The translations under genes were made by a program, and so were the position numbers. From Penicillus capitatus (lineage: Eukaryota > Plantae > Chlorophyta), in assembly GCA_965649825.1 (NCBI GenBank), contig OZ287703.1, positions 186,001 through 250,000 of the forward strand: a stretch of 64,000 bases of DNA. Reading direction: 5' to 3'. The notes beneath the pieces were generated by a model that did not search any database, was not told where the DNA came from, and saw only the letters and a program-made list of their open reading frames with translations. Position 1 is the first letter of the stretch; each line of letters starts with the position of its first letter. This document shows, in pieces, positions 25,872 to 51,100 of the stretch.

Positions 25872-28800
25872 CATACGTTTCGGGTGCAAACTTCGAAAAT
25901 AAAAACCGTCATTCTTCGCTTCGCACTTCAATCATAGTTCTCTTTAATTCTGCTTGAGTGAACTGGATTCCTCACTGGCCCATGAACACGCCATCTGCAT
26001 CTCCCTATCCTCTCTGCTAACATGTATGGACCTCTCCAGGCTGCAGGTTTGTCCGCTTCTGGGTAAAAGACTAGCACTCTTCTTCCCGTTCTTAAGAATG
26101 ACGATGGGGCTGCGATTTTTCTGCGGCTTCGCTTCATTTTGTCTTCCCTTGATTTTCTGCAATTTTGGATCGCCTTTGCTCTCCATATCTTCAGTCTCTC
26201 GTCGTCGATTCGTTCTCCATTTCGTGTCACGCCCCAGAAGAGCTCATTGGGCGTATATTTCGTTACGCCATGAACGGCATCATTGATTACGTCCTCGAGG
26301 CGCTTGCGGTCGATCGGGAGCTCTTGGTTCGCGGTCATCTTTTCCACTCTCGTCTTGATGTTCCCGACAAGGCGCTCCACCCGGCCATTAGTATTCGCGG
26401 TATAGGTGGGAGAATAGTAATGTGTGATCTGCCGCTTAGTGCAAAAGGCACGCAATCGACGACCACAAAGTGCTTGGCCTTGATCCAAAAATATAGCTTT
26501 TATGCCTCCATGTCTTGCCACGGTAGCATTCCGCCACCTCGTGAGGGCCTTGATCACGGTCTCTTCGTTTGGGTGCGTCGTTATCGTTATCTGGCAGACC
26601 TGGTTAGTCCGTCGACGATTGCTAAGACGTGCTTGTTCTTCTTTTGATATCTTCTAAGCTTGATTGGTCCTAGGAAGTCGAGGAACAACATGTGGTTTGC
26701 CACGAGGCATTCGATGCATCTCCATTCGTCTCTAAGACGGGGTCTGACTCCCCTTTGACAACCCTCGCATCTTCGCACGAACTCTTCAACATCCGTTCGG
26801 GCCGATGGCCATATGCTTCCGTCCCTTTTGAGGTGCTCCCATGTTCGGCTGGAGTTCCAATGACCGTCGTGGGCTGTTCTCAGTCGTTCTGTCTGTTGCT
26901 CTGTGAGAAATGTCGTTGCTGCCTTTTCCAATGATGGCCATCGGCTTAAGACATCTGCCACCCCGTTGGATGCACCGGGAAGGTAGCACACTTCAAGTCT
27001 GGAGGGGATCTCGAAGTTCGTCCAAATCCAATCGAGCAGTCTGGACACCCTTGCGTCGAGGAGTGACCGGCTTCGTGGTGTTTCCATTACGCATTGTATA
27101 CGCTTTGGGAATCTGTCCACACCACTATTCGCGTTCCTGCTGTCATGACCTTTACCTCCTCGAGGGCCCAACAAAGCCCTCTCAGTTCCCCAAGCATGCT
27201 GCTCACAGTGCCGTTGGCTTCACGACGACTGTTGATTCCGATCAACAGTCCTTCGCTCATCGGTCCTGAGAACAGAGCATATCCGGTTCCTACGCCGCTC
27301 CAGTCGACATAGAGGTGCGATTCCTTCGTCGCATTGGTTGGTAGTCGATGCAGTGACATCGAGTTACGCAGCACCAGTTCCCATACTTCCCTTGTCTTCC
27401 TCTGCAGTGTGGCGAGATCTGATCGATCCTTTCCGGGAGACTCGGTTCTTTTTGTAAAGGCTCCAGTCACTGGCTTAGTCTGTGACATGTGGGTCGACAG
27501 ACGTTCAGTATTACGATCATCTTCTGCAGTTGATGCTTCGACGTCGATATGGACACTTGGGTGCATTGCTTGCGAATGTAACTCTCGAGGCTGAACGTTG
27601 ATTCTCGGACACCGTACCCCAGAAAAATCACTTGCTTTTCACAGAACTGCATCTTCTGTCGATTGGTGTGAAGGCAGTGGGCCTCCATCACATTTAATAC
27701 TTCTTCCAGATTGTTGTCATGTTCTCCTTGATCGCGTCTGCCAATCAAGATGTCATCTTGAAAGATGACTGACAGCTTGGGGGTCTCGAAGACCGAGCGC
27801 AGACGGCTAAGGAACAGCGAAGGGCTGCATGACCATCCCATCGGAAGGCATTTGTATGTCCACCTCTTTCCTTGGTGCTCGAATCCGAATAGCTTCTGGA
27901 GGGCATCGCAAACCTGTAGGTGAAAGAACCCACAGTCTAAGTCTAGGACAGTAAACCTGTCCCACTCGACTGGTATGGACGATACTGTCTCTCTCACGCT
28001 CGTCATTTGAGCCTTCCACGTTCGGCAGTATGTACTCAAGAGCCGGAAGTCGAGCGTCTTGCGTGCGTTCCCGTTGGGCTTTTTGACCCATATTGTGGGG
28101 CTCGGAAAGACCCTTTCACCAGGCCTCACTCTTCTAATGACCCCACGCGCCTCCATATCGGCGAGCACTTCGTCGGCTTCTTTGGTAGACGTCCCCAGTC
28201 TCATATCGAGCGCCTCTATTGCAGCTTGGAATGTCTGCCACGTCTTTCAGCCACTCGATCTCTTTGAGGCATATCTTCAATCGTGCGATCGGCTTGCCCA
28301 CGCCGAAGATGCCTTTGGAGAATACCGCTGGGTATTTCTGCACAAAGTGATCCAGATCGGCTTTCTCCGAGTGGGCTGATGCTGAGACGAGACTCATCGA
28401 AGGATTCTCGTCTTCTTCGTGGGACGCTTTCGGCTCGCTGATGTCGAATCGGCTCTCCGGTGTCTTGATGAGTGCCGCTGCCTTGAGTTTCGGACTCAAC
28501 AATTTGGCTTCGTCGGCAGAATTATAGATTTGGACTCTTACCGTTCCTTCATTGGACAGGGAAACGGAAGCTAGTAGGTTACAGACCTGTAGCACTGGCA
28601 GCACGCCTTGGATCCCGTCTCCTACCACGCTGGACGGTAGAACCAGGATTTTTGTTTCCTTGAGGCCCATCACGGTGGACCTTCCGAGGGGCAAGTGAGC
28701 TCGGTTGCCCACGACTGCGACACGCGCCTGTTAAAGTGACGGATTGACTACTGCCCTGAGTCAATCATGTGACGATTCGAAAGATGCGGCGAAAATGAGT

Positions 28801-29821
28801 CGACGGCATTATTTATGCGCATACCGTATTTGCACAAGAGATTATTGGCTGATTGTCTGAGAACTTCAACCCTGTAACCCGCGATCACAATTGATGTCGT
28901 CTGGGCGTCGAAGCGTTCGCTTCGTCCTGGGCCCGATTCGGCATTTCACAGCGCCTTATTCCTTTGGCCGAAGATGGAGATCTCTACTATACGGTGAGCG
29001 GCGGATCTCCCCTGGATTCTTGGCTCTGGGGCTGTAGGCAGTGCCGACTAGTATAGTCACCGCGAGCTGCAACCACGCGATAATCATTGTGTCAACTGTA
29101 CAGGGTAACAATGCAGTGTCCGCCTTTTTTATTCGCATGATTGTCTAGATCATAAAATTAGGCTCACAGGGGCCGAGGTCCCCAGAGCTAGCAGTTTTTT
29201 GCAGCTGAGCTTTTGAGGCTGCATGGCAGAAGAGTCTCTCTCTGCATGGTCTCTGCAGGTATTCCTCGCTGCAGTTGATGCTGAACTCGAACTGACGTAA
29301 GGCTGGAGTGCCCAGTATCGTTTTTCCCAGTTGGGGAACAACCAAGTGCGTCACACTCTTCTCTGAGTTCCCGAGGTGAGTGTTCAGGGTAGTCTGCCCA
29401 AGAACGGGTAGACCCTCGCCTGAGACTCCGTAAACTTCCGTAACGTCGCAAGGCACTGCTGAACGCTCGATCTTTTCGCAGATCCTTCTGGACATCAGGT
29501 TTGCGGACGACCCGGAGTCGATGAGAAATTCCCGGGCCCAAGGCTCGTTTTCGATCCGCCCTTGCACGTGCGTGGAGGAGAGGTCTCCCGTTGCCCCTTT
29601 CCGTTCCACTGACCGCCGCCGTTGTCGGCTGCTGAGAGCACCCTTCATCTGTCCGAACTTCCCCTCCTCTGGGAGAGGACCGGCCACTTCTGAAGCTGAA
29701 CTCATCGTCAATGTCCGATCCCATGCAGGTGGACGCTGTATATGCTCTGTCTTTTCGCTGTTTGGGGCACTCATCCTTCCAGTGCATCCCACGGCATATA
29801 GGACACGGAGCGATGGGCTTG

Positions 29822-30775
29822 CTAGGTCTGGCAGGGCAAGCCCAAATCGGATGATCGTCTCCCCCACATCGTTTGCATCGCTTCCCTCTCGGAGTTCCTC
29901 CGTCCTTTCTCGGAGAAGCAGAGGGTCCGGGAGAATCGAATGAGCGTCGGCGGCTGCGGGTCGGGTTTGTCGACCCTGGAGCCTCGTTTTTCGTCCGAGG
30001 CCAGCCTTAACTCCCTCAGGGCATTCTTTACCTCCCTGAGTTCTTGTCTGAGGTCGTCGTCATTGACTTCTGGCTCGCTTTCCCACTGCAGGCGTCGAAG
30101 GAGTTGGATAAACTGTTGGATGGCTATTCCCAACACCACCCAGATTGGCAGATGGAAATACCACTTTACCACAGCCTTACAGCCTCTCCACATGGCCGTC
30201 GCCTTCAGCTACATCAGGCAGAGCACATTTGTGACGATGAATGCCACGCAGAGGTATAAGATCGTCCACATGATGCGGAGCGACGTGCCTGTGTCCGTCG
30301 CCGCCGCTGTGATGAAGTCGGCGACTGAGGTTCCGATCCAATGGAAGGTTGACCGCCACATCCCGATTTCGAACGCGCCGGCATCCGGCGCAGTAGGCCT
30401 GTCTTCAGCCTTGGAGTGGTCGCGGCAGAGAACCATGCTTTCCAGAACTTCCATCGACGCCCCCGTCGTAGACTCGGCCGTTTCTTCACGACATGGACAG
30501 CATGTAGCCGGACGTTTGCGCAGTCTAACCGACTCTCCCAACAGCTGGTCTTTGTCTTCTCGGCACTCCGCGTTCTCTTGTCGCAAGAGCTTAATGGTCT
30601 GCATTGTCTCCGCCACGTTCTGCCTGGCAGTCATCTCCAAGCCTTCGTTGGACGTATCGTCGCTTGTCGCTGCCTCCGCTTGGACACCTTTGTCGCAATA
30701 AAGGAGTATTGCCACCATCACAGCCATGACCGTCCGTCTGTCCCCATCGCTCCGAAACCAGATGTCATTGCTCAA
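29822..30775 (-). pseudogene. Retroelement ORF1: hydrophobic leader, coiled coils and two predicted TM helices; interrupted by one in-frame TAG at 30209-30211
   Basis: ORFs 30209-30775 and 29822-30193 share a frame (LCLM*LKATAMWRG). Hydrophobic stretches are MAVMVAILLYC, WTILYLCVAFIVTNVLCLM and WYFHLPIWVVLGIAI. Confidence 0.6.
30749..30760 (-). promoter_or_regulatory. Primer binding site (initiator tRNA-Met-like)
   Basis: Minus strand reads TGGTTTCGGAGC, 2 nt inside the 5' LTR; this is two mismatches from the plant iMet PBS TGGTATCAGAGC. Confidence 0.7.
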
Positions 30776-30911: not shown

Positions 30912-32381
30912 TGGGAGAGAATGAGCAAGACCTTGACCGAGAGAACGTTCATGCGGCTCTCGTGAACACAGGCATTGAACCATGACGTCAATTTACGTCA
31001 GAAAGACAACGTAAACGGTCGGATAACACCCAGTCCGTCGCGTTTTACTGAACTTAGCCGCCGATTTTCGTCGCTGAACACGCCTCTCGGCGACCTGCTC
31101 TTGTAGCGGTTTGCACCAAGTTTTGAATCAGGACATTCCATAATGATGACAGGATACATGACAGCTTCCACTGTCACATCAAGATCCAGGTCTATGCGCG
31201 TTTGTTGCATTCACTCCTTGCTTCCTTTTCCCTGTAACCCTTTCAGCGTTCATTACCTAGATGATATGGTTTCAAATCGAAGGAGCTCCTAGAATTGTAG
31301 AGTCCGACCGATTGATGCCAAAAGATCTTGTGTTGCACCTCCGTTTTAACCAATTTCGTCCAATCGTCGAGGAATTCGAGATCTTGGATCATCGTTGCAA
31401 TGTCGACGTTTTCTTGCACATCCGTTCCTTATCGGTCTACCTACGATCAGCTTCGCATAGTCCTTTTGACTAAAGCCTTCTTCTGTAAACAACTCTACCC
31501 ACCGATTTAAAGCCGGGATTTTCTTCAGTGGGGAAGGCTCGCAACACGGAGTACCGGTAACAATCATCAAGGCCCGCTCAAAATGCCGACCATATCTCGA
31601 CTCTCTTCAATTGCAGTCTATTTCTTGCAACTCTTTTTAGCGCACAATTTGATTGACCATCTTTTGTACAAGAGAACATCACCGTTGATTGACTTGACGT
31701 TAACTTCTGTAACGACGCCCCGATGCCTATGCAACAATATCCATACGGTTCTTCCCTTCTTACGGCTTCGACGTGTTCAAGCAATTCGGCGACACCCTTG
31801 GTCCTAGAACATCTTTACACAACAGCGTGTGAGTACAAATAGACTGTGATGAACCAATCAATTACTTAGACCTGTCGATCGTTTCGCTCGCACAGTCAAT
31901 TTTTCTCACGCGAGTCTCGCGTTCGTTCGGCTGATGATTACTGCCATGTGCTGTTCAGCAAGCTTTAAAGGTGCACTTATCAGTTTTAAGTGAAAATCCG
32001 TCCCTGCCTTCTGATCGGGTTGGGCTACAAATAAGGAGAACGCGGTAAATGTCAAATGTGTCACTTCTCCGTTGTCGCCTCTGGGAACATAGCATTCATT
32101 GTCAGTTCCACAAACACCGGACTTGCGTCAACATCGAATCTTGCAACCTGGGAACACGAGAGAATGGCCCGAGTTAACGAAAAATGTAGCAGTGGAAACT
32201 GGCTGTCTCCCCTGTTGGGCAGGTGTCGCTTCGCGAAAGCCCGAAACGTCAACAGATTGTTTTCTTTGTTTGACGATGCCGTCTGGACTAAGAAAAGCTG
32301 AAGCGCGGTCACGCTCAAGCGCGTGTAGAACAAGCGTATAGATGTTTAGGTTCTTTGACGTTTAACAGATTGCAAGTGTTA

Positions 32382-33521
32382 TCAACTCAACTTAACTGCG
32401 ACCACGTTCTTGAGAAGGCCGAAGCAAAACATTCCCTTCGGATCTGTCCAAACTTGTTTGATCGTCATTCCAGCGGTCGCCGACAGATCTTGAAGATCGC
32501 CTGCCGAGTACTTGACGGAGAAGTGATAGAGTATCAGTTCGTCTGTCTTCAACTTCACGTCGACGCTCTTTTTGCTATCTCCGGAGAATGGCGGGGGGAT
32601 TGTTATCGTCTGGTCGGAGAGAGACTTTATGTAGGACTCGTACTGGCCGTCCTTGACGTTGTATCCAGACCATCTCTCGAACTTGGTGACATCGAAGACG
32701 TTCTTTCCGAGCAGACGATTGAGACAAACGAGGGTGTTCACGCCGAGGGCGGCGATAATACCCTTAGAGTCGTTGTAGGCACGAAGGATCGTTTTCGGAT
32801 CATTTCGCCTGTCAGCCGCCAGAAAGAAACCGTCTTCCGGCTCCATCGCGCCGCCATAGAGTCGCATCAAATCAGCCGCCTCCTGCCTCGTCATGTCGCC
32901 CACAGATGATCCCAGCCACAGGAAGAACCTTGGCCCGGGAATGTTCGGCAGAAAGGAGACCAGATCCTCGTAGGTTCCGTGGATGCCGGCGTAGGAAAAG
33001 TTCCACTCTCCAGACGCGTCGTCTGCCTCCACCTTCGCTCTCAGATTCTCTAGAGACTGGCGGAGGTACGTATCGTCGATGTCCAGACCGTAGAACCTGA
33101 GACTCTTCTTCTTGGCGACGTTGCGGAGGTAGTCCAGAATGATGGCCGTCTTTGTCATGCTGCCGCATCCGAGCTCCACGATGGCGGCGCCGTCAGGAAT
33201 GTGTACTGCGATCTCATCCATGTGTGTTCTGAGAAGTGATCTCTCGCAGGCTGTCAGATAGTACTCGTCTTCGAGCTTCGTCAGCTCCTCGAACAGCTCC
33301 AGGCCTCGCGTGTCGTAGCGCAGAGGCGTGGTAAAGCGCCTTCGGCTTCGATCGGCCGAAACGCTGACGACAGTGCCGTCGGCGAGCGTCAGCTCACGAG
33401 CGTCTTCCGCGATCGCCCCGGGATTGATGAAGTCCTTCAGCGGGAGCTCGTCGGAGGCGAACAGCTGCCCGTCCGTCAGAACGTGGACGGGGACGTCCTC
33501 CGCCAAGCCTTCTGTCGTCAT
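32382..33521 (-). CDS. EgtD-family methyltransferase, copy 4 (3 aa different from copy 2)
   Basis: 379 aa ORF differing from copy 2 at GVST->SVSA and LLGT->LLRT. Confidence 0.9.
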   Translation of the reverse strand: MTTEGLAEDVPVHVLTDGQLFASDELPLKDFINPGAIAEDARELTLADGTVVSVSADRSRRRFTTPLRYDTRGLELFEELTKLEDEYYLTACERSLLRTHMDEIAVHIPDGAAIVELGCGSMTKTAIILDYLRNVAKKKSLRFYGLDIDDTYLRQSLENLRAKVEADDASGEWNFSYAGIHGTYEDLVSFLPNIPGPRFFLWLGSSVGDMTRQEAADLMRLYGGAMEPEDGFFLAADRRNDPKTILRAYNDSKGIIAALGVNTLVCLNRLLGKNVFDVTKFERWSGYNVKDGQYESYIKSLSDQTITIPPPFSGDSKKSVDVKLKTDELILYHFSVKYSAGDLQDLSATAGMTIKQVWTDPKGMFCFGLLKNVVAVKLS

Positions 33522-35049
33522 CTCTCCTTCTGCTGCCTCTAAGCACGACGCCGAGAAGAACCGTCAACACTATAGCGAACGTCGGATCGACGAGGCGGGA
33601 GGACGGCGAACGAATACTCGCCGAAGAAGATTCGCTTCGTACGCAAGCGCCTGTAGTACAATCTTAGAGACATGAATGGCTCTAACGAGGCCATCTGGAG
33701 CGTCCCTGTCTCCTTACAGCACGGATGCAAGCAGTGGAGGCCTGTGGTGAGGCGTCTCGATTCCGACTCCCTCATCGTGACTGTCTGCACTTGTCATTCT
33801 GTCTGGCTTCCTTTCCTAACGCACTACACAGCACCAGCGAACGTAGAATGGGGGGTATTGCGTTCTGGGTCTGCAGTGGTCGTCCCTTCGTCACAGTGAA
33901 CCAGGCATCCAGCACCTGTCACTTCGAGAAGCCATTCTGCCTGTTCTGAAGTCTTCTCGAGAACAGCTTCTCGCTCTTCGTCGGGGTGAATATCATTGGC
34001 TGCCTTCATTCTCTTCGAAGAGGAAGCAATGAATGGCTTCTGGGATCTCTGTGTTCCTGCAGGTCGAACATGTCTCTCCGTGTAGATGTGCTGTCTCGGC
34101 GTGATGTAACCTGTCGGGAGGCATTTGATGCCCTGCGTTAGGGATTCCAGCTTTTGCTCTGATTTCTACTGCAGTGGTAAGGGCCTTAAGGATAGAGGCG
34201 ATAGAGGTGACCGATGTGATTTAGTAACGCCGACCTTATCGCAATGACGTCAAAACGTGTTTGCGAGAAGAATGGACTAAAACCGATTAGAGCATTTCCG
34301 AACTTTATTTGGGCGTTCCTCTTTTAAGTGTTAAGTCAAGATGGCTGTTACGGCAGCCTTTAACGGCGGAACACCGTTGCGGTGTCAAACGCCCTTCGAC
34401 ATACGAACATAAATACGACCTCGTTCCGTGACATCAGAACGGTATTCGACGTCCAGATTTGACATTGTGTCGATTTTCTTTCGGCGTGTACATTGGCGGA
34501 GTCCGTAGCGCTCTAGTGCTCTTTCGTTAACTTGCTACCTTCCGATGTTTATAATTGCTATCGGTTGTTGAAGACCTTGTACTGGAGATGTAGCGTCTAA
34601 TGCGTTGTTCGTAGCCGTCGGAAGCGGTTGCGCGTCATGTTAACCACCTCGGCGCGCTAGCCATCAGCTGCGACGGATGCTAGTCTCCGAGTCAACCATC
34701 TTTTAACAATAGGGTAATGGTTTTCGAACAAGCCTTGAACTTCTCGACTGTTGGATGTTATGGTTAGGGAACTCACAACCACCGTGGGTATTTAAGGGTG
34801 ACATTCCCGTTGTAAACAATCTCGAGTTCCTGTGTTATAATCTGAGCGTTCGTCTGCGTCGTCGTTCGCGCGTCTCTCGACTCCGAGTTTCTCTAAAGCG
34901 ATTACACGATCCTGACACCTTGTCTACACAATAACGTCACGTTGCTCGTGTTGTTGGACCGACGAGAATCTCTTTTGCGTTTTTCGAGTGGCAAGTATAC
35001 TACGATGGGCAAGGCGCAGAGCAAAAACCGCGTGTTCATTCGTGGAGAA

Positions 35050-36192
35050 ATGGCATTCAATGTTCAGACTCAAGAAATCCCTGTCCATGTGTTGCTAGGA
35101 AGCCGACATTCTAACCGCGACGTGTTAGTGCTCCTCGACGGATTCATAAACCCGCTCCCTTGCTCAGGGGATGGCGTGCGTGAGATGACTTTGCCTGGCG
35201 ACAGAGTGGAAAAGATTCATCCGGAACTGCGCCGCCGTAGCTTTCCATCGTCACTTGTTTACGACACGCGAGGCCTGGAACTGTTCGAAGAGCTGACGAA
35301 GCTCGAAGACGAGTACTACCTCACCGCCTGCGAGAGATCCCTCCTCAGAACACACATGGATGAGATCGCAGTACACATTCCTGACGGCGCCGCCATCGTG
35401 GAGCTCGGATGCGGCAGCATGACGAAGACAGCCATCATCTTGGACTACCTCCGCAACGTCGCCAAGAAGAAGAATCTCAGGTTCTACGGTCTCGACATCG
35501 ACGACACGTACCTTCGCCAGTCGCTGGAGAATCTGAGATCTGTCGTTGAGAAAGAAGACAGGGACGCCGAATACACGATCTCTTATGCTGGTATCCATGG
35601 GACTTTTGAGCAGCTGGTCTCCTTCCTTCCTAACATCCCTGGTCCGAGGTACTTCCTCTGGCTGGGGTCCACCATTGGTAATATGACGAGGCAGGAGGCA
35701 GCGGATTTGCTGCGCCTTTACGGCAATGCGATGGATCCGGCAGATGGCTTCTTTCTTGCAGCGGACAAGCGTAATGACCCCCGAACGATCGTTCGTGCTT
35801 ACAATGATTCTCAGGGCAGAGTCGCCGCTTTCACCATGAACATTCTTGTCTGTTTGAATCGTTTGCTGGAGCAGAATGTTTTTGATGTGACGAAATTCGA
35901 AACTTGGTCTGGATATGATATCGCAGCTGGGCAGAATGAAATGTACTTCAAGTCGCTGGTCGACCAGACCATTGTCATCCCTGCTCCATACTCGGGAGGC
36001 GTCAAAAAGTATGCAGAAGTGCGCCTGAAAAAAGATGAGCTCATACTGTGTTTCGTCTCCGTGAAGTACTCTAGCGATGATCTAAAACTCCTAGCTGCTG
36101 CTGCTGAGTTAGCCGTTGCACAAATCTGGACCGATCCACAAGAGATGTTCTATTTTGCTCTCCTTAGGAAAAGTAGCAGCACCAAAGAATGA
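35050..36192 (+). CDS. EgtD-family methyltransferase, copy 5 (paralog of copy 3)
   Basis: ATG at 35050 (MAFNVQTQEIPVHVL); family motifs intact; QNEMYF and LCFVSVKY differ from copy 3. Confidence 0.9.
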   Translation: MAFNVQTQEIPVHVLLGSRHSNRDVLVLLDGFINPLPCSGDGVREMTLPGDRVEKIHPELRRRSFPSSLVYDTRGLELFEELTKLEDEYYLTACERSLLRTHMDEIAVHIPDGAAIVELGCGSMTKTAIILDYLRNVAKKKNLRFYGLDIDDTYLRQSLENLRSVVEKEDRDAEYTISYAGIHGTFEQLVSFLPNIPGPRYFLWLGSTIGNMTRQEAADLLRLYGNAMDPADGFFLAADKRNDPRTIVRAYNDSQGRVAAFTMNILVCLNRLLEQNVFDVTKFETWSGYDIAAGQNEMYFKSLVDQTIVIPAPYSGGVKKYAEVRLKKDELILCFVSVKYSSDDLKLLAAAAELAVAQIWTDPQEMFYFALLRKSSSTKE

Positions 36193-37071
36193 AAACAAAC
36201 CTCGACATATGCGCTTGTATGATGTCTGTCTCAGTGATTTCCTGAGCAGTGATGGGGGTCCTCCCGATTTCCGTCGTGATTTGGTATCATCTACTGGAGC
36301 ACCGTTCGAACTGTATTATAAGTTTCATTGATTATCTGAACGAATATTACATCGCACTAGTTTAAGAATTTAAATCCGTTTCGACTAGGACGATCTCAGT
36401 TGTTACACCTCATTAAGCAAAACTCACTTCCATAAAGCAAATTGATTAAGTAATAAGATTTGCTCGATTATTTTTGTGTACGTCGAATTACAGTATTCGT
36501 GTCTGTCAGCGACGGAGTTCAGCCGACACTCAGCTTCATCGAACAAGTGTTGTGCACGTGCAAACATAGATCACACAGAGTCTTCCCAACACAGCGCATG
36601 AACTTAAAGTTTCGTCAATTCTCTTCACAGTGACTAGTCGATCAGCCTAAAGAGTTCATCCGCTTCACGATCTCAAGCGTCGAGAATGCCAAACCCCGTA
36701 TGTGTGATGTCACACAAAAGACATCAATCAGTCTGGAGACGAGATGATGTCTTCGAGGGATATGTGAGGGTGATATCGAAGGTATGAAGGCATGAGACCC
36801 GTGTCAATAGAGCAATGCGACGGTAACTTAAGGAGTAATGCACCATCGCCGACTTCGGCGTCACCTAGAACAGCGTAAGCAAAAATAGAACGTCGACATC
36901 AAAGAGCGGCGGTTTAAGCTCAGAGCCGTTTTCGATTTTGCGGTTTGAGCCGATTAAATAGCCGGTTAAATTTTCGTTGTTTGTTAGACTGCTTCACGAA
37001 CACGACCTTTAGCGTCTCATCCTTTTCAGTTTGACTGTGGACGCATTTTGCTCGTATTGCACGTAAATCAA

Positions 37072-38229
37072 ATGTTAGGGCTGAGAGGAATAGATTCCAA
37101 CGATTGGCGCGAAACCATTCCGATCCACGTTTTGGAAGGAGGCCAGCTCTTCGACCCCAACGAGCTCTCTCTCGACGAATTCATAAACCCAAGTTGTTGC
37201 TCGGCGAATGACATCCGCGAGTTGTTCTTGCCTGGTGGCATACTGAAGAAGATCTATCCAGAACAACGCCGCCGAAGCTTTTCGTCGTCTCTGCTGTACG
37301 ACACGCGAGGCCTGGAGCTGTTCGAAGAGCTGACGAAGCTCGAAGACGAATACTACTTGACGGCCTGTGAGAAATCCCTACTGAAATGTCGCTTGCGCGA
37401 GATCGCAGTACACATTCCTGACGGCGCCGCCATCGTGGAGCTCGGATGCGGCAGCATGACGAAGACAGCCATCATCTTAGACTACCTCCGCAACGTCGCC
37501 AAGAAGAAGAATCTCAGGTTCTACGGTCTCGACATCGACGACACGTACCTTCGCCAGTCGCTGGAGAATCTGAGATCTGTCGTTGAGAAAGAAGACAGGG
37601 ACGCCGAATACACGATCTCTTATGCTGGCATCCATGGGACCTTTGAGGAGCTGGTCTCTTTCCTTCCTAACATCCCTGGTCCGAGGTACTTCCTCTGGCT
37701 GGGGTCCACCATTGGTAATATGACGAGGCAGGAGGCAGCGGATTTGCTGCGCCTCTATAGAGAAACAATGGAGCCGGAAGACGGCTTCTTTCTGGCAGCC
37801 GACAAGCGTAATGACCCCAGAACCATCGTCCGTGCCTACAACGACTCGAAGGGTATCATCGCCGCCCTCGGCATGAACACCCTTGTGTGTCTCAACCGTT
37901 TACTAGGACAGAACGTCTTCGATGTCACCAAGTTCGAGAGATGGTCTGGATACAACATTGCTGACGGCCAGAACGAAGCCTACATCAAATCGCTAACCGA
38001 TCAAAAAATCGTGATCCCTGCACCCTTTTCAGGAGACAAAGAGAAAAGTGCCGAGGTGCACTTGAAGAAGGACGAATTGATCCATTACCTCTATTCCGTC
38101 AAGTACTCTTCAGAAGATCTCAAAACCTTGGCTGTCGCTGCTGGACTGACGGTCGAACAGATCTGGACGGATCCGAAGGAGATGTTTTATTTCACTCTCC
38201 TTAAGAAGAGCAGCAGCACCGAGGAATGA
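37072..38229 (+). CDS. EgtD-family methyltransferase, copy 6 (mosaic)
   Basis: First in-frame ATG at 37072; the core at 37401-37755 is nearly identical in DNA to copy 5, while the flanks resemble copies 1, 2 and 3. Confidence 0.88.
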   Translation: MLGLRGIDSNDWRETIPIHVLEGGQLFDPNELSLDEFINPSCCSANDIRELFLPGGILKKIYPEQRRRSFSSSLLYDTRGLELFEELTKLEDEYYLTACEKSLLKCRLREIAVHIPDGAAIVELGCGSMTKTAIILDYLRNVAKKKNLRFYGLDIDDTYLRQSLENLRSVVEKEDRDAEYTISYAGIHGTFEELVSFLPNIPGPRYFLWLGSTIGNMTRQEAADLLRLYRETMEPEDGFFLAADKRNDPRTIVRAYNDSKGIIAALGMNTLVCLNRLLGQNVFDVTKFERWSGYNIADGQNEAYIKSLTDQKIVIPAPFSGDKEKSAEVHLKKDELIHYLYSVKYSSEDLKTLAVAAGLTVEQIWTDPKEMFYFTLLKKSSSTEE

Positions 38230-38338
38230 AGACAGATTCCATCCTTCTGATTTTACAAGAGGTTTGTTATCTGTTTTTGACGTAAATTGCGGTCTTTAAT
38301 ACATTTTGAGCGATGATGTTTGTGTCTTTCTGCACCAC

Positions 38339-41058
38339 ATGTCCGCCGTTACCGTCAAGATCTACGATGCCTTGCACACCTTCGGACCTGCTTTTCTCGT
38401 TTCGGTCTCTCTTGCCTTCGTCTGGCCCATCGTCGACGATACGTTAGCAGGTGGCGTACCTTGATCCGGGAAACTGGGCCACGGCTATCGAAGGCGGTTC
38501 TCGTTTTGGCTATCAACTCGTATTGCACACGCTTTTGTCACGCATCCACGCATCGGAATGCCTTGTCTCGCAGATTTGGGTCGTCGTCGTGTCGAATCTC
38601 ATCGCCATCCTTCTCCAAGTATTGGCCGCTCGACTTGGCATCGTATCAGGAAAACACCTCGCTGAAGTCTGCCCCCAGAGCGTCGCTTTCTGCCGTCATT
38701 CTTGCCCTTAGGTCTGTCGAGAGCAATATCCTCCATCCGTTTGCCTCCTTCTCTGGTCTCTCTCCGAAATCAGCATCGTAGCGTTGGATCTCACAATGGT
38801 CTTGGGTATGCATATACATCCTTGATGGGACACCTGTCACATCCGAATCTATGTTCTCTTTAGGTACAGCTGTCGGTCTGAATCTTCTCTTTGGCATCGC
38901 ATTGCTTCCAAGCATCCTCCTAACGAGTCTGGATTTTGTCGTCATCCTGTTGGCCGTGCCAAAAGTTGGAAGGGTGCGTTTGTTCGAGCTCTTTACGGTA
39001 TCCATCGTCGGCATCGTCCTGACATGTTTCGCCGTGGATGTGGCACTGACGGCCCCTTCACTAAGGCAGGTGCTCGGTGGTCTGGTGCCAACCCTGGATC
39101 GATCGTCGATTTACACAGCTGTGTCATTGTTGGGTGCCAATGTGATGCCACACAACTTCTATCTCCACTCAGCTCTCGTGAAAAGCCGCCATCGAGGAAA
39201 CTGTTCCATCGAGTCTCTCTGCAGACTGAATCTCATTGATGTGACGTTGGCCCTGGGGGTGGCACTGTTCATCAATCTAGCTCTTCTCGTCGTTTCAGCA
39301 TCCACCTTCCATTCTGCAGGCACGGTCGTCTTCTTTGGACCGAGGACAAAGCTGTTGTCGCAGGAGTCGTGGTGGAGACGCTTCAGGCGGCACATGATTT
39401 GATGGAGCAGCTTCTGAGCAGCCACTTAGCTCCAGCTGTATTCGGATCGGCGCTTTTGCTTACCAGTCAACTGTCCACCTTCACAGGCACGATCTCAGGT
39501 CAAGTCATCCTCCAGGTGAGGCAAAACTGAACAGCATCACAATTTGTGACGCTTATCTGCAGGGATTCCTAAATTGCGAGATTAGTCCTTGGCTACGTCG
39601 ACTCCTGACCCGTTCCTTAGCCATTCTCCCTGCCATGACGCTGCAGATGATCTACGGCGATGAAGGGACATACAAGTATACCATGCCGCTCAGCATCGTA
39701 TGATCACTGAGTAGGCGTATAGGATGTTGGTCATTGCCCAAGTGGTGCTGGCCATTCAGTTGCCGTTTACACTCGTCCCTTTAATTAAGGCCACATCCAA
39801 TCGCACCCTCATGGGATCCTTTGCCAATAGCCTTATCGTTCAGATCATGGCTTGGATGTCGACGCTCCTGATCTTCTTGGCGAATCTGATGCTCTTCGCT
39901 GCGATGGTTCTCCCGTCGGAGCGGTCGCATCAACAGTCTTATCAACTCCTACCGCGTCTCAGGGATGTTATGCTCTCATGGACGAGCGTTTCGTGGCTAA
40001 GGCTCTTGTCTGGTTCGCTGCTGTTCTTGGTGACCGGTCTTGGCATTGCACTGCTCATCTGGATGCTCATGACCCCCATTTCCTATGCAGAACGGATCGA
40101 CAGTCCCGTCGTTGTCACCGTGCAACAGCTCGTCGCACAGGATGCCAAACAAGCAGCAGCAGATTTAGAAGAGATCGTGCTGAGGGAAGACACGAGGACA
40201 TGTCGTCTGGCATTTCTGGACGAAAAGAAATTTGGCAAAGCCGCTAGAAAAGCATTCGCAATAAAACTCGATGAGTTCTGGAGTCAGTTCTACGATTCCT
40301 ACGGCAAAGCGATCTCATCGACAGAGGCTTCGGAAAGGGACGAGTCCATCAGGCATTGTCTCCTGTCCATCCACAACCTGGAGAATGCATCGGAGGTGCT
40401 CTCCCTTTCGGAAGCGTCTCCTTGGGACATCGTCGATCAGGCGATTCTCTCTCTACTGCATGTGGCGCTCACAGATCTGCCAGCGTCGGAGCATTTGTAT
40501 CCCTGGAAGTGCAAGCAATGCCATATGGAGGTTTCGGATCCCTCGGCGATCGAACTCGTAACGGCGGCCGAACGAGATCCGCAAGACTCAAAGGAGATGT
40601 TTCTTTTTGGACTGTGGTCATTGAGGCAGCTGCTCCGTCTATGTTCATCAGAACCGCGTCCGGAGTTATGGGGAAAGTACAGCGGTGTGTTGAATCGACT
40701 CCAGTGGCTGCTGCCACACATACCCTGCAATGTAAACCGCACCGAAATCACGACAGATGACGTCCTCTATCTCTTACAAATACTGCAGCAGCACATCCAA
40801 GCGAAGAAAGGTGCCAAAGACACACTCCCGGCCGCCACAGCCTTCCCGAAAGTACGCACCGACGACCTATGCCTTAACCGTTTGCGATGGAAACTGCCTC
40901 AGGGAAAAGAGATCGTTATGTCTGTGATAAAGAGATATAGACGGGCACTCAAGAGAAGCCCATCCGCAGCGTCCAGTGGAGCTGCGAGATTTGGAGCTGG
41001 TATTGGATTATTACACTTCTTGTTCTGTCTCGTCGACATCGATAACGCAACGACATAG
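38339..41058 (+). CDS. EIN2: EIN2-like protein: NRAMP-type membrane domain fused to an EIN2 C-terminal (CEND) domain, multi-exon
   Basis: [22 protein letters not shown] and MPHNFYLHS; CEND boxes [59 protein letters not shown] and AFPK|[16 protein letters not shown] (51-nt in-frame intron at 40852-40902). The last exon is uncertain. Confidence 0.88.
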
Positions 41059-41071
41059 GAGACAAGATGTA

Positions 41072-43619
<2,548 letters not shown>

Positions 43620-43879: not shown

Positions 43880-45724
43880 TCATGCGCCTCCGAAATTGAA
43901 CGGCATGCCTTCCTCCCCTCCTTCCCCACCGCCACCACCATTGCCAAACAGATACGCACCCTGATCCTGACCCGGAGGCGGGACCAGATTCTCCCCTTCC
44001 ACATCCTCCAACTCAAAATACGACTCCAGCAGTGTCACAGCCTTATTGTAGATATCTTCATTCTGATGCTCCTGCAGATGTTCAATCTTATCCAATCCAC
44101 CTGCATCTTCGATTTGTGTGACATATGGATTCATACCATTCGCTGTCTTCTCATCCTCCCCCACCTTGAGGATGTTCTCCAATCCCTCTAGTGCCACGAT
44201 AATGATACGTGCATCGGAGCAGGTCAACAGATCGCACAGTGGCTTGATGCATCCACAGGTGACGAGAAACTTAATCTGGTGTGGCATTCCGCCAGATGTG
44301 GCATTGCTCAGCGCCCAAGCGGCCTCCTTCTTGATGTCAAACTCAGCATAGCTGAGAAGCTGGACGAGGGGAGGAATAATATTGGCATCGATAACGGCTT
44401 GGATCTGCTCCTTTGTTCCTGCCGTGATGTTGGACAGTGTCCAGCACGTCTCTTTCTTAATGCTCTTCTTCTGATTGCTCGTTACGAGATGCAACAGACA
44501 AGACAGCGCTCCACAGTTGATGATCACCTGGGTCTGCATGTCATCTCCTGTGACGATATTCCCAACGGTGCGCAAGGCAGGGACCAGTACATTAGGTGCC
44601 GGATGCATCAGGAGCTCGACCAAACGACGACAGACACCAGCCTGGATGACTTTATCGATTTTGTCGTTGGGGCCATCGGAGAGATAAGACAGTGCCCAAC
44701 AGGCATCTGTCAAGATCTCTTCGTCTGTACTGTGGATGTGACGTGCCAAAGCCGGCAGCGCATTGCGAATGAGTTCAAAATCGGGTCCAGGTTTGCCTCT
44801 GCAGAAATTGGACAGCGTCCATGTCGCATTGCGCAACATTGAGAGCTTTGATGATTCGCGCAGCTGTTCGAGCAACGGCCAAAGGGCACCCGCTTCCAAC
44901 ACCTTGTTACGGTATCCCGTCGAATCTCCAGCGATATTCCCCAATGCCCACACGGCCTAAATCGCCACGATCTCACACCTGTGGATGATGTGACAGGTGC
45001 ATAACCTGTTCTCGGACATCGTCGTTGGGGGAACTCAGTAGACGGACGAAAATGGGAATAGCGTTGTTATCGATCACAACGCGCGTGTGATCCGATGTCC
45101 CCGATGCGACATTCGTCAATGCCCACGCAGCTTCGAACTAGACCGCACACCGCCGCCAGAATGCGTGCGTCCTGTCATCTCTGTGATGTGACGTTTCTAC
45201 CTGAAGTTTCGGGAAGTCGTTGCGTTCGAGGAATTCCACAAATCTGGGAATAACGCCTTGCTTAATCACCTCGTCAATGGGCGGATTGCGCTCTGCACGT
45301 ACCAACACCTCGTCAGCGTCGTCCTTTGGTCGAAGTCATACCAATCGAAAGGATCTTTCGGAACTTCTGTGTCGCTTCGAACTGTTCCTGCGGATTATCA
45401 CTCCAGCAACCGTACACCATGTTCGGCATCTCCTCAAACTACACCCCCACCGACCGACTCGCGCTGCGTTCCCCGAGCGACGAGCGTGAGAAGAGAGACC
45501 GTTTGCGCGAGGGGGTTGGCTGTGGAGCTGCTTGTGTCTGGCGGCGGAGGGGCGGCGCCGACACCTTCCAACGCCGTCAGACGTTTTTTCTGTAAGTTCT
45601 CTTCGCGTTTGTTCTTGCGCTGCGCCACGATGTCGTTGCCACGACGTCGACGACTCTCTTCTAAATCGACCCCTTTTTTAAATTCCTGCCGACGGCGGGC
45701 GCTGTTTCCATTTGGACGATCCAT
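43880..45724 (-). CDS. IMPA: Importin subunit alpha
   Basis: IBB domain [27 protein letters not shown]; ARM repeats [34 protein letters not shown] and [13 protein letters not shown]. Confidence 0.96.
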
Positions 45725-46694: not shown

Positions 46695-48109
46695 ATGGCG
46701 TCGACGAACAGAACCACGGCGGTGGCCAGTACAAGTATGTGCGTTCACCTAGTCGGGAAATCACGGATCCGAGTGGATCGCAGGCCGAGCACCTCCTCGA
46801 ACGTCATCGAGGCGCTTTTCGGTTCGATGTGTCGCACCGTCGGCATCCGAAGGACATCACCGTTCTATCAGTCGACGGCAACTTCTGACGCAGTCGGGTC
46901 TCTTTCTCACAACCTCCCTGGCTCTGACGACTGGCGGTCTGACGACGTCACCTGACGCCTATGCCAACACACCGATCTCCAATCGGTGGGAGCTGGTGTG
47001 GCCACTTCTCTTGCAGGTCACATCCGTCACATCATCTGTCTGCAGATCGACCTGCCGATCGACAAAGAAGTGGTGCTACTGGACATCGGCTTTACCGGAT
47101 CGGACCCCAAACACGGTACCCTCTCCTCCTTAGGCAAGACATGTCGGATGGTGGCGGCCTACCCTTAGGGTTTCTGCTCGGCACGCGACAGACGTTGCTA
47201 GAAACATTTGACGGCGGGAGGACATGGGAGCCACGTTCGATTCAGGCGGCTGTGGACGAAGGCTTCAACTACCGCTTCAACACAATCAGCTTCAGCCAAG
47301 ATGAAGGATGGATCGCAGGAAAACCGTCGATTCTGCTCCACACAACCGACGGCGGAAAGAACTGGGAACGCATTCCACTGAGCTCCAAGCTTCCCGGTGC
47401 GCCCATTCTCATCACAGCGCTCTCCGGCGAAGGCGGCCAAGCTGAGATGTCCACCGATCAAGTAGGATCTGCCTGCTGCCCATGGTATGCGTGAGATGAT
47501 GGATGGGATTAGGGGGCGATCTATGTGACGAACAATGCGGCCTATACTTGGCAGGCTGCCGTGCAGGAGACCGTCGATGCGACGCTCAATCGCACCGTCT
47601 CCAGTGGCATCACTGGCGCCTCTTACTACGAGGGATTCTTTGCCAATATCCGTCGAAGTCCTGCGTCGGGTGACTATGTCGCCGTGAGCTCGCGTGGGAA
47701 TTTTTATATGACGTGGTCGCCCGGCGATACTTTCTGGATGCCACATAACCGTCCGGTCAATCGACGGGTTCAGAATATGGGATGGACACCCGATTCCCGT
47801 CTTTGGATCACGTCTCGTGGCGGCGATCTCTCCATCGGCGACCAGCCTGGCATCACAGAATCCTTCTCGGCGTCGAAACTAGGATCGAGGGGATTCGGAT
47901 TACTCGATGTCGGATTCCGAACAGAAAACGAAGGTTTCGCCTGTGGCGGCAGCGGAACGCTCTTCTATTCCAACGACGGCGGAAAAACGTGGAAACGCGA
48001 ACGGGCAGCCGATGGCATCCCTGGCAATCTCTATCTGGTGAAATTCCAGTCGGCCACTCAGGGATTCATTCTCGGAAACAACAAGATCTTACTACGTTAC
48101 ATTGCATGA
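46695..48109 (+). CDS. HCF136: Photosystem II assembly factor HCF136/Ycf48, multi-exon
   Basis: [60 protein letters not shown] and [10 protein letters not shown]. The start is inferred. Confidence 0.93.
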
Positions 48110-48165: not shown

Positions 48166-51100
48166 TCACGCGATATCGTCGTCGTCGTCGTCTTCCAATC
48201 CCCAATCGTCCAAATCGGCCTCTTCTGTACCGACAGCCGCCGGCGGCGCCTCCTCTGCTTCGAGAAATGTCTCTTCTGTTGTCGCGTCCTGTGGAACGCC
48301 GCCGTTTTCGTTTGGCCTTTGTGTCTCCTGCATCTCTCTCAGCGGATGCGCTCGATTCGATCCCTCCACTTCGGGAAACGCCGATGCTGGAGGGGGATGC
48401 GCCATGCGTTGTCTGGCAAAGCCTTCGGCCTTTAACGCCAGCTCCAAGTCTTCAAACATGTTTGGGTACTCTTTGGGATCGGCCAGTGCCTCGGCCGCTT
48501 TCGGATTGATCTTACGGACGTCCTGTTTCCAAAGATGCACGATATCGGAGATACGACTAGGTGCATAGGTCCGTGCAAAGAAGGCCGCTTCCGGCAGACG
48601 GTCACTCTCGACCAGCAGATCCACACAGGCATCGATCTCTCCCAGCAATAGATGGCACATGAAGGCTATGTTTGTCTTTCCGGTGGCTTTGGCCAGGGGA
48701 AGGAGTTTCTGCATGCCGGATCGTCGACTGGTGGAGCTGTAGAGCAACAGCAGTCCACTCACATCTTTGCCACGCAGCAGACACTCCTCACAGAGTTGCA
48801 TCTTTCCTTTGGCCATGGCCAGTTCGCCCAACTGCTTCCATTTCACTTCACTGTCCATCTCCTGTGCAATCTCATGCGCCGTCTCTAATCGTCCCAACTG
48901 AACGGCCAGATCGAATCGGTAATCGGGATCTGTTGCCACGTCCAATGCCTCGGACACGAGTTCTCTGGTCTCCAAGAATTTAGCAATCTCATTGAGCTTC
49001 TCTTTGGGAATCATCTTCAAAACCTCCTTAGCCGTATCCATGTCCCCACGAATCACAAGTGTCTTGTACTCAATAACCGTCAGCAATAAAGTATAGGAGG
49101 TGATCGAGAACTCCTTGTCGATCAGAAATACGCGACTCTGTGCTGCCATGTAGCCCAGGAGATACATCGGACGATCGAGATGAAAAAGCGTAAACACATC
49201 GCCTCCCACACAGTAGTTCAGTCTCCAGGCACTGTTGTTATAGACAAAACAGTCTCCAATCCACACAGCAGATACCACCTGGACGCATCAATCATCGATC
49301 CGTGCCCGATGGAATCAAGATTACCTGTTCCGAAACGTCCTGCACAACTTCGAAGGCATCTTCGATGCCATCTTCGTCCACCGCCTCTCCACTACTGAAC
49401 ACCTCATCCACGACGTCTTGCTTGAATTCTAAGATGTAGAACGAATCGGCGGTGGTAATGGCCAACCAGTCGCCTGAATCGGACCAGTAGACGTTCTTGA
49501 CACTGACATCGATCCTAAACCATCGCCGCTATGGATGGATCCGATCAGATGGATGTGAACTGGATGGAGGGTGCGCTTCATCCCGAGGCACTTACCGTCG
49601 AACAATGCGACCAGCTGTCCAGTCGTAGAAGACGATGAAGTCCGAGGCCTTGACGCCGATCAATGCCCCGCCGAAGATCGTCTCCATCGAGAAGCTGCAC
49701 TTGATCGTCTGCTTCTCCTGAAAATTCTTGAAGATCTGCACCTTCGACCTGTCACATCACATTGCCTCACACAAAAGCAATGCGATCGACAAAAGTGTGA
49801 CCAGCCAGATTTGATGGCATACTCATTGGCTTCGGATCCCCAAACAAACTGCTCAGCATTTCCAAAGCTCTTGTTGCGCCAGGCCAACGCCGTATAGATA
49901 ATATACTCCCCATCGCCACACACGGCCACGAATCTCCCGTTTCGGTTATGCTGCAGAGAGTGGGGATAGGCATCCGTCGATCCGAGATCTTTAATACCCA
50001 ATGGCAAACGCTCCCCATCTGACATCGCATAGTCTGCCGGAAGCGATTTGAGATTCGTTGTCTGGATCTCGTTGTTCTTCGCCCACAGAATTTTCCCAGA
50101 AGCATCCATCGATGCAAGCGGCTCATCTTTGCCCAGTTTCAAAATCAGGACGCCTTCATCGTAGCCCACGCCCACGAGATTCAGACCCTTGCGGCAGCTG
50201 ATGGCCCAGACACGTTCTTTCCCTTCGGCGATCGTGTCTTCCAGACGGAACGTCGTTGAATGGAAGAGTCGTATCGTCCCGTCTTCAGATCCCGATATGA
50301 TAATGGGCTTCTCTGGATGGAAACATACGGACGAGACATTATGTGTATGTCCTTCCAGCACTTGCACACAGCCTTTCGTCTGGTAGTCCCATACACGGAC
50401 AGTCTTGTCATCGGCACCGCTCACAAGATACGGTCTGTCTCCCCCTAAGCATCCATCCGTCCATCCTCCACGTCACATCACAGCGATGACCGCACCGGTG
50501 AAGTAGTCGACGGTGTTGACACCCTTTTCGTGTCCTTCCAGAGTGAAGTTGGGCACAGGGGAACCCAGACTCCACACTTTGACGGTGCGATCCAACGAAG
50601 CACTGGCGAAGGTGTTTGTATCTTTGGGATTGAACGTTACCTATGACACAACGCTCGTATCATTGCCCACTCATGCACTTCTCACTCAAGGTCACACTTG
50701 CATGACGTAATGCGCATGGCCTTCAAACATCTGAACGCATTTCCAGTTCTACACCAAAGATCACCTCACGCAAAGTGGCAGAGCTGAGAGAGACAAGGAC
50801 GCACGTTGTCCCAGTCCCACAGTTTGATCAACATGTCATCGGATGAGGAGAGGAGGTAAGGAAGGGTTGGATGCACAGCTAAGCTTCTGCACAAACGCAC
50901 GGAGTCAGAAGCGACGGACTGGCAGTAGACACGAACGACCGTATGTAATCCGTATGCGCCTCGAAGCTTTTCTCTTTGTCCATCGTATTGTAATTAAACA
51001 CACGAATCGTCATGTCATCCGATCCAGCGACAACCCATTGCTTACGGACAATGAATTTGGCGGCGCGGACTGCAGAGAGGACGCATGCTCAATGAGGTGT

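Follow-up and report, generated by a model that had tools for sequence, protein, structure and literature searches.

EIN2 is the central, and structurally the least understood, component of ethylene signalling, and current reviews date it to streptophyte algae. It has been stated to be absent from chlorophytes (PMC10518463), a 2024 transcriptome survey reported the 'EIN2 signaling domain' to be absent in most chlorophyte lineages (bioRxiv 10.1101/2024.02.21.581324), and the Draparnaldia genome paper found no EIN2. A gene in the green alga Penicillus capitatus raises the question of whether this picture is complete. The gene lies on the plus strand at 38339-41058 of a 64,000-nucleotide (nt) stretch, hereafter the window (assembly GCA_965649825.1, contig OZ287703.1, positions 186,001 to 250,000). 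An original prediction made from the sequence alone described it as a minimal EIN2, in which an NRAMP-like domain is fused to the boxes of the EIN2 C-terminal domain (CEND), in an apparently chlorophyte genome. Here we ask what this gene is, how old its tail is, and what that tail might do. The gene is an intact single gene encoding an NRAMP and CEND fusion, as judged from its reading frame. From sequence comparisons we are highly confident that it is a chlorophyte-type EIN2 orthologue, intact and selectively constrained, whose nearest named relative is that of Ostreobium (Ulvophyceae). The mechanism that we propose for the protein is more tentative, and for identity and mechanism taken jointly we put the probability at roughly 0.5.

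One gene for an NRAMP domain and an EIN2 tail

Three-frame translation of 38200-41250 yields NRAMP-like and EIN2-like peptide pieces on the plus strand, interrupted by short frame shifts. Joining these segments at splice boundaries gives an uninterrupted frame of 775 codons that opens with the ATG at 38339 and closes with the TAG at 41056-41058, exactly the start and end first proposed for the gene. The model has nine exons and eight introns of 44-58 nt (38405-40902), with seven GT-AG boundaries and one GC-AG. The non-canonical pair flanks the 44-nt intron 5 (39320-39363), and we accept its excision because it is the sole junction that restores the frame together with an 11-residue sequence matching homologues without a gap. 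Exon 1 (38339-38404) encodes amino acids (aa) 1-22, exon 2 (38451-38519) the first transmembrane helix (TM1), exon 4 (38712-38805) TM3 with its DLTM motif, and exon 5 (38864-39319) TM4-TM7, including a 13-residue TM6 motif. Exons 3 (38574-38666), 6 (39364-39515) and 7 (39563-39675) are placed by the spliced frame and, for 3 and 7, also by comparison of introns with Ostreobium.

Exon 8 (39723-40851; 376 codons) carries TM10-TM12, the linker and CEND boxes 1-3. Its frame is continuous across all of these, so the NRAMP domain (Pfam E 3.7e-110) and the tail cannot be separate genes, and the predicted fusion holds. Intron 8 (40852-40902) splits box 4 right after AFPK, and exon 9 (40903-41058) encodes the rest of that box, a hydrophobic tail and the stop. 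The box 4 motif AFPKGKE...KRYRR is readable only once intron 8 is removed. With that done, every motif quoted in the original prediction is found where it had been placed, including IEGGSRFGY at 38487-38513 and IRHC inside 40348-40407. Complete single transcripts with both domains are available from Tetraselmis astigmatica and Picocystis salinarum.

The same structure recurs in a sister species. A contig from a different ENA metagenome assembly (L003) holds the orthologous locus between the same neighbour genes, with exons 83-93% identical to the window at the DNA level. Apart from one extra codon after the start, insertions and deletions are confined to introns, including one of 4 nt. All sixteen splice dinucleotides are kept, those of exon 1 and the GC donor of intron 5 included, and the spliced product is an intact protein of 776 aa with 88% amino-acid identity to that of the window. 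Between the two species the ratio of nonsynonymous to synonymous substitution rates (dN/dS) is 0.037 in the NRAMP core, 0.153 in the CEND core, 0.31 in the linker and 0.52 in the last 30 codons. These values indicate that both domains are kept by selection, the NRAMP part very tightly, its core being constrained four times tighter than the tail.

The N-terminal part is recognised as an NRAMP domain (PF01566; 38475-39831, spanning introns 2-7; aa 31-384) and matches the solved MntH structure 5M94 at E 1.4e-76 in a PDB sequence search. Hydropathy and an AlphaFold2 model both give twelve hydrophobic or helical segments, as expected of a 12-TM protein; the last, TM12 (40018-40074; aa 447-465), has a hydropathy of 2.37 and is a helix at 439-464 in the full-length model. 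We aligned the window protein with 11 chlorophyte proteins, the EIN2 of the liverwort Calypogeia and five canonical NRAMPs. The metal-site residues (Asp and Asn of TM1, Ala and Met of TM6) align with those of canonical NRAMPs, and both TM6 histidines are kept. Thus the TM1 motif DPGN (38463-38474) is as in canonical NRAMPs, and the TM6 motif (39133-39171; 13 aa, including GANVMPH) differs from them by an EIN2-type change of Thr to Asn. Retention of DPGN and the TM6 Met had been predicted, and is borne out. Its use as the mark of an intermediate form is not, as all eleven chlorophyte proteins and Calypogeia EIN2 also keep both. In the angiosperm representatives P0305 and P0322 the site reads IDLGK and the metal-site Asn is lost; Arabidopsis EIN2 we take to read DPGK.

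The domain had also been called transporter-like, and here the alignment points elsewhere, toward something other than a plain transporter. At TM3 (38787-38798) the canonical DLAE is replaced by DLTM, a Glu-to-Met change found in every EIN2-type protein in the alignment and in none of the five canonical NRAMPs. Further EIN2-type changes are ATD to ATA in TM1 (VTL in the liverwort), GAT to GAN in TM6, and GQSST to GQLST and VMEGF to VL.GF in TM8; canonical bacterial and eukaryotic NRAMPs have none of these changes. In studies of the Deinococcus and Eremococcus Nramps, the TM3 glutamate (E134 in Deinococcus Nramp) adjoins the metal site and contributes to the proton pathway. That every EIN2-type protein has lost it suggests altered coupling across the whole clade, and the shared derived NRAMP characters mark both halves of the chlorophyte proteins as truly orthologous to EIN2.

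Canonical NRAMP and MntH proteins, such as the Staphylococcus capitis DMT of 5M94 and the Nramp-USP fusions P0019 and P0039, have the fold and metal-site residues of the window protein and are 50-52% identical to it over about 385 aligned positions. They differ in the TM3 Glu of DLAE, the Thr of GATVMPH and in GQSST, and the tail of the bacterial fusions is a universal stress protein domain rather than a CEND.

Downstream of TM12, a linker (40090-40224; aa 471-515) precedes the CEND core (40225-40965, interrupted by intron 8; aa 516-745). Box 1 (40231-40311; 27 aa) follows the pattern G.AR+..LD.FW..YD.HG and box 2 (40348-40407; 20 aa) the pattern C[LIV]..L..LEG. Box 3 (40600-40716; 39 aa) reads FG.W...L.L...E.RPELWG+Y..VLNRLQ and is the family's most conserved stretch, with invariant columns in our tail-family alignment (A1). 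Box 4 (40804-40956, 16 + 18 aa once intron 8 is removed) has the form AFPKGKE...SV.KRY. Searched by itself against a database of 5.8 billion proteins, the C-terminal stretch of 305 aa returned four close relatives, the Ostreobium protein (E 1e-29) and angiosperm proteins at E 1e-14 to 1e-9, one of them named 'ethylene-insensitive protein 2'. The profile built from A1 matched only 176 clusters among 1.84 billion representatives and retrieved named ETHYLENE-INSENSITIVE 2 proteins of Dioscorea, Elaeis, Ananas and Asparagus at E 1e-83 to 1e-69. Cluster look-ups of ten of the profile matches gave mostly angiosperm EIN2, with no further algal classes.

AlphaFold2 places the four boxes in one body. 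Modelled alone from 16 aligned sequences, the tail has a mean predicted local distance difference test score (pLDDT) of 76.9 and a predicted template modelling score of 0.75. The full-length model has a mean pLDDT of 80.5, with aa 471-507 of the linker below 50 and predicted disordered, and the core, compact and mostly helical, at 70-94 over aa 516-743 (70-95 over aa 516-745 as annotated). A confident helix at aa 716-741 forms part of box 4, and the basic motif KRYRR, which corresponds to the land-plant LKRYKRRL 'nuclear localisation signal' (NLS), is predicted inside a confident helix of the folded core. As boxes 1-4 are each helices of one compact model, a single fold is predicted for boxes that in plant EIN2 lie dispersed along 600-900 residues. 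A PDB sequence search with the tail found no solved relative (best E 1.1), and Foldseek of the tail model against the PDB gave no match at E <= 0.001, with template modelling scores of at most 0.25.

What sets the window protein apart is how little separates these parts. From TM12 to box 1 there are about 45-60 aa here, against about 120-190 aa for the other chlorophyte proteins and about 240 aa for the liverwort one, and the spacing from LDEFW to RPELWG is 130 aa here, 127 in Tetraselmis, 180 in Ostreobium, 320 in Chlamydomonas and 497 in the liverwort. With almost no disordered sequence, the protein is a practical minimal EIN2 for structure determination and partner screens. Between boxes 2 and 3 stands a CxxC element, PWKCKQCH (40501-40524), kept in the window clade and Ostreobium and matched by CxxxC at the corresponding place in land plants. 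Single conserved cysteines also occur in box 2 and box 3. We rejected a universal zinc site made of the conserved cysteines, as the CxxC is missing in Tetraselmis and Picocystis; possibly the element binds metal or forms a disulphide in the tail fold of some lineages only.

The original prediction credited the gene with every conserved C-terminal box of EIN2. This stands for the four pan-green boxes and fails for five streptophyte motifs, which neither the window protein nor any chlorophyte-type protein examined contains: (E/D)GPxS(F/Y)R with GSGSLSR after it, shortly before box 1, ERRYSSL, QPATxHGY, KKYxS(L/M)PDISG and SLWSRQPFE. In Arabidopsis EIN2, S645 would lie in a GPPSFR motif and S924 in KKYSSMPDISG, a provisional assignment. 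The numbering used for it reproduces the published peptide coordinates (511-539, K629, R647, 648-662 and 1269-1284; PMC3909086), among which the CTR1 site S645 falls in the tryptic peptide 630-647 (PMC3909086). On sequence comparison, then, the motifs around the CTR1 phosphosites are missing here, with the place of S924 provisional. The linker lacks any S645-type motif, and at about 45 aa in a protein of 775 aa it agrees with the predicted absence of the long land-plant linker that holds CTR1 sites.

Descent of the gene in green plants

Full-length proteins with both the NRAMP domain and the tail occur widely among chlorophytes. We found them in Tetraselmis (889 aa), Picocystis (893 aa), Ostreobium (paralogues of 857 and 958 aa), Chlamydomonas reinhardtii (XP_001700793.1, P0005; 1029 aa) and Scenedesmus ('nramp2', P0007; 1192 aa), and in two further MMETSP/EukProt transcripts of 871 and 911 aa. 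Boxes 1-3 are recognisable in all of these matches, and box 4 in all but the Chlamydomonas and Scenedesmus models. The shortest full-length members are those of the window (775 aa), its sister (776 aa) and a more distant relative, L004 (about 780 aa); other chlorophyte proteins have 857-1192 aa and streptophyte ones about 1250-1730 aa. The named chlorophyte proteins (Ostreobium quekettii CAD7702742.1, P0282; Tetraselmis astigmatica, P0002; Picocystis salinarum, P0009 cluster; P0007; P0005) have the same two-domain layout, the same EIN2-type NRAMP substitutions and boxes 1-3, with NRAMP identities of 57-71% to the window. They differ from it in being longer, with a longer stretch between membrane and box 1, and the introns of Ostreobium are long where those of the window are 44-58 nt.

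Land-plant EIN2 (Arabidopsis AT5G03280, Calypogeia fissa P0017, moss PpEIN2A/B) resembles the window protein in its 12-TM NRAMP-like domain with DLTM and in boxes 1-4, and the Calypogeia protein also in keeping DPGN and MPH. It differs in its length of about 1250-1730 aa, in long disordered inserts with the streptophyte motifs and in having no hydrophobic C-terminal segment; a role in ethylene or abscisic acid (ABA) signalling has been shown for the land-plant proteins only.

To place the gene, we used a bootstrapped neighbour-joining tree, a distance method, over 384 NRAMP-domain columns with one streptophyte sequence. The window protein groups with that of Ostreobium quekettii (90% bootstrap), this pair with Chlorophyceae (100%), and all chlorophytes form a clade (96%) with the liverwort EIN2 outside. 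The branching follows the chlorophyte species tree, with Picocystis outermost, then Tetraselmis, then Ulvophyceae and Chlorophyceae. Identities over the domain fall in step, from 70.8% for Ostreobium through 64-67% for Chlorophyceae and Tetraselmis and 57-58% for Picocystis to 45.8% for the liverwort. Six of the eight intron positions in the window gene coincide with junctions of the Ostreobium gene, among them that bounding exon 2, that of intron 5 and that after AFPK, the last also found in L003, L004 and L005, a further relative. Ostreobium is a bryopsidalean ulvophyte. Among the genes around the EIN2-like gene are those for the photosystem II assembly factor YCF48/HCF136, importin-alpha, beta'-COP, a starch-branching enzyme and an isoamylase, which point to a eukaryote that photosynthesises and makes starch. 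The isoamylase, an ISA1 of green-plant type, is 64% identical to that of a Chlamydomonas, 59% to that of Auxenochlorella and 58-61% to those of land plants. Judged by these sequences, the gene is most likely a core-chlorophyte gene, possibly of the ulvophyte side, acquired by vertical descent, a case that is strong but not final. The chlorophyte host first suggested for this DNA is thus supported by the tree and by the six introns in common with Ostreobium.

On the same comparisons, the NRAMP and tail protein predates the split between chlorophytes and streptophytes. The suggestion that the tail is older than streptophytes is upheld by its presence in Picocystis, Tetraselmis, Ostreobium, Chlamydomonas (boxes 1-3 in the retrieved model) and Scenedesmus. 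An origin before the split implies repeated loss, since surveys report the protein absent from Klebsormidium, Mesotaenium, Chlorokybus and Mesostigma. Of the two EIN2-like paralogues in Ostreobium (P0006, P0141, P0283, P0282), one is split by EukProt into separate NRAMP and tail models, which the NCBI model joins. Split gene models of this kind may be one cause of the reported absence of EIN2 from chlorophytes. One EukProt entry assigned to the haptophyte Diacronema (Pavlova) lutheri (P0135, in the cluster of P0011) shares at least 90% of its residues with an EIN2-like protein of Picocystis type, and is most simply read as contamination by a small green alga rather than as EIN2 outside green plants.

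How new is this? We found no open paper describing the EIN2 tail boxes in chlorophytes. RET1, which we take to be an old Chlamydomonas name for an EIN2-related NRAMP, was not confirmed as such by our literature searches. A 2025 paper on moss takes as outgroup of its EIN2 tree a Chlamydomonas reinhardtii EIN2-like protein, CrEIN2L, Cre07.g315200 (PMC12290401), and a 2013 paper identifies Cre07.g315200 as NRM3, deleted together with RBD1 in the 2pac mutant strain and still missing where 2pac is complemented with RBD1 alone (PMC3772215); we do not equate this literature label with XP_001700793.1. The novelty claimed for the gene is therefore reduced, at database level, by the full NRAMP and CEND proteins already public for at least four chlorophyte classes. 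The EIN2 tail in chlorophytes is under-appreciated, although the sequences and the 'EIN2-like' label are already public. That the tail is older than ethylene signalling is a real message, and one that is not unique to this gene. With chlorophyte homologues in the databases and the Chlamydomonas gene so labelled, the find is incremental though useful.

A tail held at the membrane or released

Beyond the folded core, the window protein ends in a feature that land-plant EIN2 lacks. Directly after KRYRRALKR comes a C-terminal hydrophobic segment (40984-41040; aa 752-770; hydropathy 1.63), a putative tail anchor. It is identical in the sister species, and divergent in sequence yet as hydrophobic or more so (1.97-2.21 where computed) in L004, L005, Ostreobium, Scenedesmus and the protein P0352. 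Across seven chlorophyte proteins of ulvophyte and chlorophycean type, hydrophobicity is therefore kept without conservation of sequence, the pattern expected of a membrane anchor. Tetraselmis, Picocystis and the liverwort have no such segment. If the segment is a tail anchor, the EIN2 tail would be tethered at both ends in ulvophyte- and chlorophycean-type algae.

Work on streptophytes offers a guide to what a tethered tail could do. In moss, the conserved C-terminal 80 aa of EIN2 are needed for SnRK2 activation via the B3-Raf kinase and for the binding of ETR-type histidine kinases, and the ABA and osmostress role requires neither the NLS arginines nor EIN3, so that one of the two roles of the conserved tail is independent of nuclear localisation (PMC12290401). 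Streptophyte algae likewise show co-precipitation of EIN2 and SnRK2 (bioRxiv 10.64898/2026.05.21.726866). The corresponding C-terminal part of Arabidopsis EIN2 is released and contains the NLS (PMC3909086; PMC12290401), and published surveys report no EIN3 in chlorophytes (PMC10518463; bioRxiv 10.1101/2024.02.21.581324). Within the 64-kb window we found no ETR, CTR1 or EIN3/EBF gene.

By analogy with these systems, we tentatively propose that the tail is held at the membrane and acts in place as a docking platform. As the D, N, A and M residues of the site are intact, the NRAMP part would still bind a divalent metal such as Mn2+ or Fe2+; as the TM3 glutamate for proton coupling is lost, it would be an uncoupled or slow carrier, or a metal-sensing 'transceptor'. 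On the cytosolic side of an endomembrane, the CEND core, fixed perhaps by both ends, would offer stress-signalling partners a platform on which to dock. The suggestion is drawn from moss, where EIN2 works together with histidine kinases, a B3-Raf kinase and SnRK2 and does not depend on nuclear EIN3. Because the long disordered CTR1-site inserts of streptophytes are absent, their phosphorylation-gated cleavage is presumably absent too and the tail is probably anchored at both ends, it would act in place and not as a released nuclear messenger.

Several points weigh against this proposal and against the identification on which it builds. Localisation, metal binding, partners and the absence of cleavage are all things that we infer, and the role of the TM3 glutamate is taken from bacterial NRAMP studies. 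The C-terminal segment has a pLDDT below 50 in AlphaFold2 and a hydropathy that is borderline for a membrane helix, and with this low confidence the tail-anchor idea draws on conservation of hydropathy alone. KRYRR, an NLS in Arabidopsis, is conserved and compatible with nuclear import, and a dN/dS of 0.037 in the NRAMP core suits a working transporter as well as a sensor. As to identity, the single transcript in Penicillus capitatus is predicted from the genome sequence; isoamylase separates chlorophytes from land plants weakly, and the lineage is read mainly from one gene tree with one streptophyte.

Against this background, the alternatives differ in what they dispute. A pseudogene, a mis-assembly of two genes or chance open frames could be suspected from the one GC donor that the model requires and from its unusually short introns. 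Yet an independent sister-species contig has the same structure, GC donor and intact 776-aa frame, dN/dS is well below 1 in both domains, and the order of EIN2-like gene and convergent AAA ATPase gene recurs in three relatives, so that we give an artefact scarcely any credence. A streptophyte host, or horizontal transfer from a streptophyte, would deprive the gene of any bearing on the age of EIN2, and the weak isoamylase marker (64% against 58-61%) leaves some room for it. Such an origin is nonetheless very improbable, as the gene tree follows the chlorophyte species tree with a 96% clade that leaves out the liverwort, six intron positions are common to Ostreobium, and all streptophyte-specific motifs are absent from all chlorophyte-type proteins.

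Two further alternatives accept the gene and dispute its mechanism. The protein may be a working Mn2+/Fe2+ transporter whose tail is an autoregulatory, trafficking or metal-buffering appendage, with signalling co-opted later in streptophytes. The four metal-site residues and both TM6 histidines, NRAMP constraint four times tighter than that on the tail, 50-52% identity to bacterial Nramp/MntH with a solved MntH match at E 1e-76, and the annotation of the Chlamydomonas gene as an NRAMP, NRM3, all fit such a protein. We nevertheless find this doubtful, given the exchange of the TM3 Glu for Met in every EIN2-type protein, the further clade changes in TM1, TM6 and TM8, the conservation of the tail boxes from chlorophytes to angiosperms, where they signal, and purifying selection on the tail itself (dN/dS 0.153). 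It is unlikely that the tail is cleaved in the angiosperm manner and moves to the nucleus, to cytoplasmic RNA granules or to both to alter gene expression. Boxes 1-4 and the basic KRYRR motif are conserved as such a messenger would need, the disordered linker (aa 471-507) could be cut, and the Arabidopsis counterpart is released and bears an NLS (PMC3909086; PMC12290401). However, the streptophyte motifs around the CTR1 sites are missing, the hydrophobic C-terminal end would hold the domain on the membrane unless it were cut twice, the surveys record no EIN3 in chlorophytes (PMC10518463; bioRxiv 10.1101/2024.02.21.581324), and one of the two roles of the moss tail does not require it to be in the nucleus (PMC12290401).

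If the tail is instead held at the membrane as we propose, a wider history can be sketched, speculative though it is. The EIN2 boxes might be one ancient and hitherto unseen helical fold, already joined to the NRAMP metal-binding domain in the ancestor of chlorophytes and streptophytes. In that original form, which the 775-aa window protein would retain with little added to it, the protein would have been a membrane-held 'transceptor' through which stress kinases learn of Mn/Fe status or of some other cue at the membrane. The ethylene switch, that is, CTR1 sites, cleavage and nuclear control of EIN3, would then have been added later through disordered inserts. Were this so, the window protein would be a natural minimal construct for solving the fold and finding its ancestral partners.

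Neighbouring genes and other features of the window

A gene for an ATPase with two AAA domains (41163-42965, minus strand) converges on the EIN2-like gene, the two stop codons lying about 105 nt apart. This tail-to-tail pairing is kept in three relatives of falling similarity (L003, L004 and L005). Beyond the ATPase gene lie those for importin-alpha (43880-44953, minus), YCF48/HCF136 (about 46961-48109, plus) and beta'-COP (48166-50424, minus), and a TRAPP subunit gene is among the neighbours in L003 and L004. We found no synteny with the Ostreobium EIN2-like locus, where the neighbours differ. Intron content varies across the orthologues: the window and sister genes have eight (44-58 nt), the L004 relative (GC content 43%) has only two, and the Ostreobium gene has at least eight long introns over a span of 7.5 kb.

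Upstream of the EIN2-like gene, within 14541-38229, are six paralogues of the Methyltransf_33 family (histidine-specific, EgtD-like S-adenosylmethionine-dependent methyltransferases), at 14541-15677 (plus), 20230-21369 (minus), 22317-23600 (plus), 32382-33521 (minus), 34942-36192 (plus) and 37048-38229 (plus). The blocks at about 20203-21390 and 32355-33521 are near-identical, which indicates a recent segmental duplication. Between them lies a retrotransposon (25928-29867, minus) with a Pfam RVT_1 match at 27467-28204 and open reading frames resembling integrase and gag/protease. A P450 gene (16162-17523) stands among the methyltransferase genes, and both the P450 and the methyltransferase genes also neighbour the locus in the sister species.

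At its left end the window carries a carbohydrate cluster, all on the minus strand: a starch-branching enzyme (2055-3751), a phosphoglucomutase/phosphomannomutase-like gene (8428-9646) and the isoamylase ISA1 (11391-13442). The first two names come from reading the translations of open reading frames, the third from a homologue search. Copies of the isoamylase in the sister species and in another relative are 96% and 82% identical, respectively.

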